Assembly (NCBI GenBank): GCA_904063045.1
Contig: CAJFCJ010000010.1
Location: 124,001-188,000 of the forward strand
Direction of reading: 5' to 3'
Length of the DNA stretch: 64,000 bases
Source of the DNA: Dimorphilus gyrociliatus
Lineage: Eukaryota; Animalia; Annelida
In this document: positions 36,015 to 42,354 of the stretch, piece after piece
How the letters are laid out: each line of letters starts with the position of its first letter
Numbering within the stretch: position 1 is the stretch's first letter
Notes under the pieces: generated by a model
Told to the model about the DNA's origin: nothing
The model's database searches: none
Seen by the model: the letters and a program-made list of their open reading frames with translations, nothing else
Position numbers and translations under genes: made by a program

Positions 36015-39000
36015 ATGTGTGGTATGTTTTGTTATTTACTTAAATAAACAATGTTCTTTAGAATACTAGGCTTTTTCTTTTTTTATTATCAAAAATGAAA
36101 CTAATCTATTATCTTTATCTAAGTTAATTAGCAAAAAACTAGTATCTAATTTTAATAAAATTCCCGCTAACTAATATTAATATATTATGATGCATAGTAA
36201 TATTAAATTAAATAATTATATTTTCGAATAAAAATAATTCTTTTAGTCTGCTTATTTTCGTCTTGAATCTTTATTTTCAAGGAGTTTGCGTTTAGTGAAA
36301 TTCTACCACATTTTCTTAGTTTTCAACCAAATTTTCAATTAAATTGCATATTATTAATAGTACACAGGTAATGGGAAGTTGGCATTGCTTATAAAATATG
36401 TATATTTAAGTTTTAAACACCAATTCGTGTCATTTAAAAGTTAACAGTTCAAATTGCTAGTTAAACTAGATAATAGTATTTCGAATTTTTGTTTTATTAA
36501 TTTTCAATCTACGGAAGGCTTAGTGCCGATAAAATTTCTTTGAAAGAGAAGTAGATTAAATATAGGCTTAGTATTCTGATTAAGTAAAGAAAATTTTTTT
36601 TTTCATGCAATCTTTTCAATTTATCAGGGAAGTTTATTTCCTATATATTTAATGTTTAAAAATGATCCAAGAGATTTGCATTCACTGTCGAACTATGGCC
36701 ATGTCAAGTATATCTGAGAAGTTTGAATTATCAGATAGTGGCGTGTCAACTTCTGAAGTCTCTGATGATGATGTGCCTAGCATTGATTGGAAAGAGGAAT
36801 TATGTGATAGATTACTGCAGCCAGTATATTATACTTTTCACAAAGGAGGTTTGCAATAGATGCGTTTAGATTTTCCTTTTTCTACAAATAATATACATTC
36901 GGCAGGCAATAAAACCAGAATTTCTATTTGTATTTTCTTTTTTATATAATGCTTTCATTATAAGTTTAGTTCATATAAGTTAATGATGTAAAAAATTAAA
37001 ATGAATAGTTTTTTGCCAAACGTATAAAATCAATTTCTTTAAAGACATCTGGGAAATAAGTTTTAGGAGCACATGTATAATTATATTGAATTTTTTGTTA
37101 GTATTTTCAAAACTTGTTAATTTGTACATATCCTGTATTAATATATATTTATGAATATATGTATCTAGATCAAAGCTTACTATAGAAGGAAGGTAAAAAA
37201 ATAAGGCTCTTAATAGGAAAACGCTTGGGAAGGGAATTTCATATATTTAAATAGCCACTTAACTGAATGGTTTCTTCTACTAGTCATTTCTATAAAGTGA
37301 ACGATTTTTACTAAAATTCACTTCCTCCTTTTAAATCTTATGTTCAATCGTCTTGTTTACTAATTTTTAAATTTCAAAGGCATATTGATAATCAATAGAC
37401 CTTGACATCTGATTTGTTACTTAAGATAGAACATTTAGGCAATAAGATGGAATTATACACTTTATTGTTAATTTTCTACGAATAAAAATAGAATGTACTT
37501 CAAGTAGTTTTTTATTACACACAGACTAACATTTGTATTTTCAGGTATTTTTGCCTATTTGAACTGTCTGACACCAAAAAGTAGACAAGAAATCCTCGAC
37601 ATCCTCATTACTGGTTTGAAAAGACTCGAATATCGTGGTTATGACTCAGCTGGGGTGGCTATTGATGGAGGAAATGACGGTGGAATTCCCAGTTATCCAA
37701 TTAATCTAATTAAGATGTCTGGAAAAGTAAATAGATTTATTTTAACATTTCTATAGAAATAATATATTTTTGTTTAGGCGTACAATAAGAACTTACAAAT
37801 TAAATGTTTACAAATAAGTTTTCAAGTACTCTTACTACTTGTAATCAGTTAAGAAACAAAACAATAGTATTAATATTTATATTCTTTTTTATTGAGTTAT
37901 TGATATTTTTGTTTTTCATTAAGAAAAATATTTTAGTTTTATTTTTTTTTTACTTTCGTTATTCCTTTTTTTTAGGTGCAGAATTTAGTTGATGAAATAG
38001 AAAAATCTAAGCAACAATTAAACTTCAATCTCGAGTTTAAAACACATTGTGGAATTGCTCATACACGTTGGGCTACACATGGTGAACCCAATTGGGTGAA
38101 TACACATCCGCAAAGATCAGATGCTGAAAGTCGTACGTAGTATTTTATATAGAGTTAACAAAATATTTATATATATTTGTATATTTCTAATGATTTTATC
38201 AGTCTGTTTGCTATTGATTTATTTATTCTCTTACGAACTAATATTTACTATAACTTTAAACATCTTATTAAAATAACAGACTTCTTTCTGAAATCTGAAA
38301 TAACTAATGTACTTTAATTTATTTTAATATATATAATTATACATGTAAACTGTATATGTATGTTTTCTTTCCATCCTTCAGAATTTGTTGTTATCCATAA
38401 TGGCATCTTGACAAACTACAAAGACATAAAAGCTTTACTTGTTAGTACTTTACTCAAAAAATTTCCTTCTTTACTATTCTAATTTATAATTTAAACATAT
38501 CGAAATCTGTCTTTTTACAGATTAATAAAGGATATGAATTTGAATCCGAAACTGATACTGAAACTATTGCAAAACTTCTTCATCACATTTACGAAATTCA
38601 TAAAGGAGAACTTTCTTTCCGCGAACTAGTTGAAAAAACAGTCCAAGAATTAGAAGGCGCATTTGCTCTAGCATTTAAGAGTACCCATTTTCCAGGCGAA
38701 ATTGTCGTTGCAAGAAGAGGTAGTCCTTTGGTTATTGGTGTCAAAAGTCCTATGAAATTGACAACTGATAGATTTCCAGTCGTTTTTGGGAAAGGTTAAT
38801 ATTATATTATTTGAAACAAAAAGCAAAAGCTCAAGAGTACAGCTTAGTAATTTTCTTTTTGCTTAAATCTAAACTTCGGGTTGATTTTTAGACGCAGATT
38901 ATGGTAAGGATCAGCGGTAGAGGCCCAAATTTTTTGCCATATTTTGTTCACTTATGAAAATGAAGTTTCCTCAATAGTAATTTTTAAAAATATAACCCAA

Positions 39001-42303: not shown

Positions 42304-42354
42304 GTTGACAAACCCAGAGGACTGCTGAAGGTGTACTCAACCAATCATACTTAA
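42304..42354 (+). other. Candidate alternative terminal exon of GFPT (VDKPRGLLKVYSTNHT*)
   Basis: TTTATTTCAACAG acceptor in phase 0. It starts GTTGAC like the canonical last exon and is paralogous in peptide. AATAAA hexamers lie downstream (about 42460 and 42487). Confidence 0.6.

Follow-up and report, generated by a model that had tools for sequence, protein, structure and literature searches.

The 64-kb stretch of DNA analysed here (the window) comes from the annelid Dimorphilus gyrociliatus and holds the single GFPT/GFAT gene of this species on the plus strand at positions 36015–41992. The present analysis concerns extra exons at three sites of this gene, namely the regulatory loop, the C-terminal tail (C-tail), and the N-terminus. 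The 11 exons, with GT-AG introns, encode a protein of 682 amino acids running from MCG to SVTVQ, in agreement with the coordinates and the product given by a first-pass annotation made from the sequence. Introns 1 to 10 measure 1523, 249, 249, 80, 1432, 56, 60, 86, 75, and 119 nt. Since the median intron of D. gyrociliatus is 66 bp (PMC7854359), introns 1 and 5, which the annotation had also singled out at about 1.5 kb, are exceptional. The coding part of exon 1 reads ATGTGTG/gtatgt (the slash marks the exon boundary here and below) and supplies Met, Cys, and the first base of a Gly codon. Its splice to exon 2 is present in RNA, as the loose end of contig 8 of RNA run X2 before position 37545 corresponds to window positions 35991–36020, and the block of promoter and exon 1 is conserved in a related species (contig L002).

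The product has the features of the class II (N-terminal nucleophile, Ntn) amidotransferases GFAT/GlmS, that is, the MCG start, a glutaminase domain with SIS domains, and a conserved tail with the catalytic Lys. The N-terminal Cys is the nucleophile of this class (PMC7948480). Domain and homology searches were run exon by exon. Exon 8 matched human GFAT1 at 1e-87 and Pfam SIS at 4e-31 (108 bits), exons 9 and 10 matched SIS with 29 and 33.5 bits, respectively, and the GATase_7/6 match of the exon 5 fragment scored 24.9 bits, marginally below the cut-off of 25. The canonical C-tail motif of exon 11 was present in all relatives compared. The full-length public protein DgyrCDS7982 (P0117) gave the same Pfam set, with the glutaminase domain followed by SIS domains. 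This record is 100% identical to our gene model from IFAYLN through SVTVQ and differs at the N-terminus; it starts at an intronic ATG at 36861 and lacks the true 7-nt first coding exon. The start exon of the record (36861–36928, MRLDFPF..ISIC/IFAY with a T/GT donor) had zero X2 depth and was unconserved in L002, and is probably a predictor artefact due to the shortness of the true first coding exon.

RNA was mapped on window positions 36355–42354. Run X2, the single data set for this species, consists of assembled spliced contigs, in which rare forms may drop out and depths are rough. It derives from the same organism (19 of 20 contigs are at least 99% alike to the window), and its contigs carry every canonical GFPT joint. 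For comparison, word searches with single exons retrieved Logan contigs of a related species (L001–L006), and the whole locus lies on L002. Against the canonical exons, L002 has a non-synonymous divergence (dN) of 0.01–0.12 and a saturated synonymous divergence (dS) of 0.9–3. Neutral sequence is therefore expected to be unalignable, and most intron sequence indeed did not align.

The first-pass annotation had proposed frame-compatible candidate exons within the two long introns, and their bare number proved to be at chance level. Intron 5 contains 32 in-frame open AG..GT segments as compared with 26 ± 9 in shuffled sequences, and open frames of 35–68 codons are frequent in intron 1 of both D. 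gyrociliatus and L002; segment counts and long open reading frames (ORFs) were accordingly dropped as evidence for extra exons. The named candidates listed in Table 1 rise above chance through RNA junctions (microexons A, B, and C, and exon 12) and through islands of conservation. With blastn against L002, conserved islands in intron 5 were found at microexons A, B, and C only, those in intron 1 at the 3' portion of the leader and at 37010–37104, and that downstream of the gene at exon 12. The microexons, the leader, and exon 12 are all kept in L002, and the comparison indicates that all the extra exons are under purifying selection.

Table 1 Exons, candidate exons, and intron 11 of the GFPT locus (window positions).
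Feature	Position	Strand	Description
Exon 1	35991–36021	+	5' untranslated region (at least from 35991) and 7-nt coding start, 36015–36021
Candidate alternative first exon	36695–36848	+	51-codon acidic leader, ..HKG/G, phase 1; conserved in L002
Exon 2	37545–37726	+	Gene model; X2 joints
Exon 3	37976–38132	+	Gene model; X2 joints
Exon 4	38382–38440	+	Gene model; X2 joints
Exon 5	38521–38794	+	End of glutaminase domain, RRGS site, last residues ..FGK, phase 1
Microexon A	38892–38903	+	12 nt, adds DADY; X2 acceptor joint, L002
Microexon B	39279–39299	+	21 nt, adds GDITHQT; both X2 joints, L002
Microexon C	39586–39606	+	21 nt, adds DGDVTRL; X2 acceptor joint, L002
Exon 6	40227–40341	+	Begins ..DHRGSG, remainder of variable loop; gene model, X2 joints
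Exon 7	40398–40755	+	Gene model; X2 joints
Exon 8	40816–41337	+	SIS domain 1
Exon 9	41424–41552	+	Gene model, X2 joints, Pfam SIS
Exon 10	41628–41828	+	Ends ..KLKNCD, phase 0; gene model, X2 joints, Pfam SIS
Exon 11	41948–42003	+	56 nt; canonical C-tail, stop 41990–41992, 11 nt untranslated, donor; candidate skippable cassette
Intron 11	42004–42303	+	300 nt, GT..AG, spliced out of canonical 3' untranslated region; X2 depth 2433
Exon 12 (start)	42304–42354	+	Alternative C-tail reading frame with stop; acceptor used in RNA

The three microexons in intron 5 are in frame, each with phase 1-1. From the end of exon 5 (38794), X2 joints lead directly to exon 6 at 40227 (depth 331), to microexon B at 39279 (depth 103), and to microexon C at 39586 (depth 419), and microexon B is joined onward from 39299 to 40227 (depth 91). 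For microexon A, the last 14 nt of exon 5 are joined at 38892 and followed by unspliced read-on. Three loop forms (no insert, +B, and +C) coexist at comparable contig depths. The inserts of 4, 7, and 7 residues (A, B, and C) fall between ..FGK and DHRGSG.., three residues N-terminal to the HRGS Ser, within the loop bearing kinase sites in human GFAT1 (PMC7948480, PMC8041777). In L002, microexon A has one change in 12 nt (DADH) and the 20 nt past its donor are identical, while B reads GDVRHQN and C reads EEDVTRL, both with length and AG/GT kept; the flanks of the microexons are strongly conserved. The position of the loop intron after ..K is common to insects and molluscs, as seen in read-through ORF fragments. 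Cassettes inserted exactly between ..SK and D(H/N)RG were found in gene models of Lingula, Magallana, Mercenaria, Mya, Haliotis, and Pecten and in annelid transcripts, the inserts at this junction in molluscs, the brachiopod, and annelids being 3–27 residues long.

The Rbfox motif TGCATG (UGCAUG in RNA) does not occur in intron 5 of either the window or L002, and Rbfox-type control of the microexons was ruled out on this ground. A search of intron 5 for long-range inverted repeats that might act as selector structures gave A/T-rich pairs only. Immediately 3' of microexon C, a hairpin formed by an A-run and a T-run (39615–39641/39658–39684) recurs in L002 (10990–11006/11014–11030), where the T-run of the microexon C acceptor can pair with the A-run and enclose the microexon. 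In Capitella teleta (L036), a 7-nt first coding exon (ATGTGCG/GT) is followed by a 2.8-kb intron 1 (6886–9658), and the loop intron measures about 1.15 kb (10946–12114); the median intron of that genome is 57 bp.

The duplicated last exon that the first-pass annotation had placed behind the gene is a genuine terminal exon (exon 12) with a strong acceptor. It is spliced after the stop-bearing exon 11 and is thus 3' untranslated region (UTR) in the canonical mRNA; it evolves as coding sequence, and, since it follows the canonical tail in the same mRNA, it differs from a simple alternative last exon. The X2 joints at the 3' end run from 41828 to 41948 and from 42003 to 42304 (depth in Table 1), and exon 12 extends to AATAAA signals at 42460 and 42487. 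Exons 11 and 12 are held together in the canonical mRNA and hence are not mutually exclusive; the same was found for the related mRNAs L008, L009, and L038 described below. The tail frame of exon 12 encodes VDKPRGLLKVYSTNHT and its L002 counterpart encodes VDKPRGLLKVYSTNNI, each followed by a stop, with 9 synonymous and 2 non-synonymous changes between them (permutation P = 7e-4). Conservation of exon 12 is confined to this frame, the other two frames being scrambled in comparison with L002, and intron 11 is unalignable. Read-through of the exon 11 stop codon into exon 12 was rejected, because the frame it would use is unconserved.

Exon 11 itself differs from L002 at 3 of its 42 coding nucleotides (41948–41989), as compared with 19% in the other exons, although the difference is marginal (P = 0.047). 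The intron sequence on either side of exon 11 is conserved too. Such conservation fits a splicing-regulatory constraint on a skippable exon. The canonical stop lies 11 nt from the last exon junction in D. gyrociliatus, 14 nt in L002, and at most 18–32 nt in L008, L009, and L038. By the general rule, so short a distance would spare the canonical mRNA from junction-dependent decay. The conserved tail frame implies that exon 11 is probably skipped at times in D. gyrociliatus.

The same arrangement was found in other annelids and in molluscs. When exon 10 was used to scan JGI metagenome contigs, two full-length mRNAs were recovered (L008 and L009), whose 3'UTR carries a second tail (VDQPRSLLKCHTH and VDQPRSLLKVHTQRD, respectively) 25–32 nt past the canonical stop, corresponding to the layout of exons 11 and 12. 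The mRNA contig L038 also has both tails in series. In the Logan mRNA contig L035, which has the MCG start, exon 10 runs directly into the alternative tail and the canonical tail is absent. Tails of the form [VT]D[QK]PRxLLK.. end gene models or transcripts of Ridgeia, L035, Octopus, Argonauta, Mercenaria, Patella, Pecten, and Pomacea; compared with 11 other tails, VDKPRGLLKVYSTNHT fits this motif, retaining the Lys and carrying Leu where the canonical tail has Ala. In genomic sequence, the alternative tail exon is located downstream of the canonical one by 300 nt in Capitella and by 8 kb in Pecten, and the order in L002 is the same. A word search with the L008 protein returned 120 full-length relatives. 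In a spider locus the intron before the tail exon is present and no second tail was found within 10 kb; L007 has the same intron, and its contig ends short of the tail. A degenerate DNA pattern for the alternative tail had zero matches in the JGI metagenome contigs. As the tail is shared by annelids and molluscs, its duplication is older than their split, and the loop and tail sites go back at least to the last ancestor that the two phyla have in common. D. gyrociliatus keeps the tail duplication despite the compaction of its genome.

Two further variants were noted during this comparison. Pecten maximus (L034) has tandem copies of exon 10 at ~82040 and ~83139 (..SMHIATLKKLD and ..SFHIAVLKGYD), which look mutually exclusive, and the Ridgeia model P0090 strings both copies together; exon 10 of D. 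gyrociliatus is single. Isoform X4 of Periplaneta americana (P0192) has a tail variant of another kind, which diverges after the catalytic Lys.

Compared with the tail of human GFAT1 (..PRNLAKS), the alternative tail (..PRSLLKV) keeps the Lys of NLAK and changes Ala to Leu. Residues 1–96 of the tail query align to positions 509–604 of the Escherichia coli chain, and the kept Lys is therefore position 603. The E. coli substitutions A602L and V605L were reportedly engineered to obstruct the channel. The alternative tail also rewrites the last five residues, from Ser-Val-Thr-Val-Glu to Val/Thr-His/Tyr-Ser/Thr-x-x. The C-tail of GFAT/GlmS has been described as the principal mobile part linking the two domains, and Leu675 and Ala676 of human GFAT2 contact the gate Trp of the ammonia channel (PMC8041777, PMC7948480).

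At the third site, intron 1 contains a candidate alternative first exon that is phase-compatible with exon 2 and would replace Met-Cys. In L002 (8329–8470) its ATG, frame, and donor (AAAGGAG/GT) are kept, with one 12-nt in-frame gap. The two leaders share 52% amino acid identity, with dN of 0.32, dS of 1.40, and dN/dS of 0.23. The G+C content of the leader is 0.38, as compared with 0.23–0.25 in its flanks. Starts without the Cys are also modelled in bivalves, as MEA[VLM]TPLI[ED]G/GIFAY in oysters and MRD[ST]G..EMG/GIFAY in venerid clams. The leader had no Pfam match, and no counterpart was detected in the Capitella, Pecten, and spider loci.

X2 depth across intron 1 is 0–11. The second conserved island of this intron (37010–37104; 8578–8669 in L002) is 95 nt long with a TATA-like ATAAAA core, and an X2 contig covering 37090–37573 enters exon 2 unspliced at approximately 1% of the exon depth; the island and the contig may represent an internal promoter or mere pre-mRNA. 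Two further X2 contigs, at 36580 and 37352, fuse at least 255 nt of other sequence onto intron 1 without splice signals. These loose ends had no match anywhere in the 64-kb window and may be chimeric unitigs or strain differences.

In our judgement it is likely that this one GFPT gene is built to yield several versions of the enzyme by splicing at the loop, the C-tail, and the N-terminus. Specifically, microexons A, B, and C add residues to the regulatory loop, a disordered part of the glutaminase domain. In transcripts that include exon 11, its stop ends the protein and exon 12 serves as 3'UTR; in transcripts that lack it, exon 10 would read from ..KLKNCD into VDKPRGLLKVYSTNHT. The resulting tail is predicted to keep the Lys aligned to that of NLAK, to carry Leu in place of the neighbouring Ala that contacts the gate Trp, and to end in five new residues. 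The likeliest effect, by analogy with the structures cited above, may be an altered coupling of glutamine hydrolysis to sugar amination. The alternative first exon would exchange Met-Cys for the 51-residue acidic leader, giving ..HKG-G-IFAY instead of M-C-G-IFAY, and this form would probably lack both the nucleophile and glutaminase activity.

A bolder version of the tail switch seems unlikely to us, namely that a splice-selected second form of the rate-limiting hexosamine enzyme has persisted in annelids and molluscs for several hundred million years, in which the C-tail plugs or re-gates the ammonia channel, in some lineages together with a Cys-less start. The re-gating would be brought about by the change of Ala to Leu beside the catalytic Lys and of Val to His/Tyr. 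Were this true, the re-gated form might work without glutamine, as a synthase fed by ammonia, an isomerase of sugar phosphates, or a deaminase-like enzyme, or it might act as a regulatory subunit within the tetramer, and the metabolic switch would parallel that between the COQ-2 exons in these phyla.

Several points weigh against the three-site proposal. X2 is a lone RNA set that holds contigs only, with rare splice forms dropped, and every enzymatic consequence given above for the loop, tail, and leader variants is a prediction, as are the ammonia-dependent, deaminase-like, and dominant-negative forms put forward in the first-pass annotation. Donor joints of microexons A and C are absent from X2, that of C being unlisted since the adjoining repeat was masked. 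The first-pass annotation had predicted switches at all three sites; conserved sequence is present at each of them and RNA bears out the loop, while the joints for skipping exon 11 and for the leader were not seen. In particular, X2 contains no joint from 41828 to 42304, and its contig 10 is unbranched from exon 6 through exon 11. Likewise, no joint from 36848 to 37545 was found in X2, and the depth on the leader is 0–4 as compared with about 1000 on the exons. Differences between the leader and its L002 counterpart are distributed over the three codon positions as 15/13/22, a weak third-position excess (P = 0.08). The leader donor is weak in the two species (GTTTGC and GTTAGA), and a stop follows 1–3 codons on if it remains unspliced. 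A profile search of 1.84 billion representative proteins for homologues of the leader gave one low-complexity false match only. Cys-less starts in the models of other species can be artefacts of a 7-nt first exon, DgyrCDS7982 being one such case, and the alternative 5' exon of L038 has no in-frame ATG.

These observations on the leader leave a serious, though not favoured, possibility that positions 36695–36848 are not a first exon of GFPT and represent either a small ORF of their own or a non-coding regulatory element within intron 1. The missing joint to exon 2, the near-zero RNA depth, the stop just past the putative donor in both species, the weak codon-position signal, and the lack of relatives in the databases searched are all consistent with it. 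Moreover, intronic peaks from the assay for transposase-accessible chromatin (ATAC) sit in the larger introns of D. gyrociliatus, which often carry open chromatin (PMC7854359). On the other hand, the ATG, the frame, the in-frame gap, and the AG/GT donor have survived saturated divergence, and the G+C content of the segment is like that of coding sequence (0.38 against 0.24 around it). Its phase fits exon 2 and places a Gly before IFAY as in the bivalve leaders MEAVTPLIEG/G and MRDSG..EMG/G, which argues for a first exon.

For the tail, it is quite improbable that exon 12 is only 3'UTR in D. gyrociliatus and that its alternative tail is an inherited relic, untranslated in this lineage. Such a relic would agree with the sole joint into 42304, which comes from 42003 past the stop, with the lack of a branch in contig 10 at the boundary of exons 10 and 11, and with the loss in D. 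gyrociliatus of the second exon 10 copy known from Pecten and Ridgeia. However, 14 of 16 tail codons are kept between two dinophilids at saturated dS, and a constraint on UTR sequence would ignore the reading frame, whereas here 9 of the changes are synonymous (P = 7e-4), the other two frames are scrambled, and the adjoining intron 11 cannot be aligned. In transcripts or gene models of other annelids and of molluscs, the protein ends in the same tail.

The first-pass annotation had further suggested that the first and last exons are chosen in a coupled manner. A coupled choice, by which one dedicated glutaminase-dead isoform would carry both the Cys-less start and the alternative tail, is very unlikely. 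Model isoform X3 of Mercenaria does pair a Cys-less leader with the alternative tail, and the failure to see either form in X2 is compatible with a shared restricted expression. Nevertheless, the alternative tail occurs with the MCG start in the L035 mRNA and in the Octopus, Argonauta, Pecten, and Patella models, and most leader-bearing bivalve models have the canonical tail; models based on short reads can reveal coupling neither way. Finally, we give hardly any credence to the view that the microexons are stepping stones or noise in recursive or stepwise removal of a long intron, without a role in the protein: although microexon A is seen by its acceptor alone, before a retained intron that stops after ..DADYGKDQR, and the splicing machinery of the species is tuned to short introns (PMC7854359), all three microexons are open multiples of 3 with constant length in both species, the depths of the +C, +B, and skipped forms are of the same order (419, 103, and 331), and cassettes occupy the same junction in molluscs, a brachiopod, and annelids.

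The loop variants resemble the only GFAT splice variant that we found in the literature, GFPT1-L, in which the 54-bp exon 9 of GFPT1 is included in striated muscle, lowering the activity and raising the sensitivity to uridine diphosphate N-acetylglucosamine (UDP-GlcNAc) (PMC10514471). Both are in-frame cassettes that enter the same disordered loop at a point a few residues N-terminal to the Ser aligned to human Ser235, and the insertion points are approximately two residues apart in a local alignment. In contrast to GFPT1-L, the worm has three shorter exons (12, 21, and 21 nt) and no UGCAUG in intron 5, and its sites are common to molluscs and a brachiopod but not to vertebrates, whereas the GFPT1-L exon and its control by Rbfox and SRSF1 were reported as mammal-only (PMC10514471). 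All three variable sites are also found in NCBI isoform models (Mercenaria X1–X8, Magallana X1–X8, Pecten X3, Octopus X2, and Lingula X3/X7/X8), which are unpublished computer models with inserts at ..SK/DHRG, tails of the form [VT]DQPRxLLK.., and Cys-less N-termini. Unlike these models, the public record of D. gyrociliatus has none of the three variants and a wrong start. The leader sequences are dissimilar between lineages, and bivalves have two copies of exon 10 while D. gyrociliatus lacks the second.

Tandem duplicated exons used in a mutually exclusive manner have been reviewed for human genes (PMC9741552). As in those cases, adjacent homologous exons of the worm gene code for alternative versions of one short functional segment; unlike them, both tails are present in the worm mRNA, and exclusivity arises from the stop in the first copy, 11 nt before the junction. 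In annelids, molluscs, and helminths, a pair of alternative COQ-2 exons has a demonstrated outcome of rhodoquinone versus ubiquinone (PMC7434440). The two systems are alike in that a splicing choice rewrites catalytic-site residues of a core metabolic enzyme in the same phyla; the enzyme and the pathway differ, and any outcome of the GFPT switch is a prediction. With respect to bacterial GlmS and human GFAT, the canonical tail of the worm is the conserved C-tail of the family, and the alternative tail departs from it in the Ala to Leu change and the last five residues while keeping the Lys. No paper on GFAT with mutually exclusive exons, or on comparable invertebrate GFAT isoforms, was found in the literature searched. 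The first-pass annotation had named the system as its best candidate for an undescribed one, and this holds for the tail and N-terminal switches insofar as no paper on them was found; the architecture, however, is common to annelids and molluscs and is partly present in the NCBI models. The worm gene extends the loop splicing already known for GFAT by a conserved, unpublished switch at the tail and a putative one at the N-terminus.

GFAT controls the flux into UDP-GlcNAc and from there into chitin, glycoproteins, and signalling by O-linked N-acetylglucosamine. Its known isoform diversity amounts to one mammal-only loop exon and the vertebrate paralogues. In the compact genome of D. gyrociliatus, variation within a single gene can extend to the regulatory loop, the C-tail that forms the ammonia channel and, probably, the N-terminal nucleophile. 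The tail switch, found in no paper, is conserved in at least two phyla. The tails provide natural variants of residues singled out by structural work, and with them a direct test of the way in which channel gating links both active sites. The analysis also corrects the D. gyrociliatus gene model in the public record. A few long introns in a genome with 66-bp introns can persist because alternative exons sit inside them.

A second RNA data set, the coral metatranscriptome X1, contained low-depth spliced fragments that are 95–99% alike to window positions 37976–41774. A close relative or strain of D. gyrociliatus therefore lives in that coral sample.

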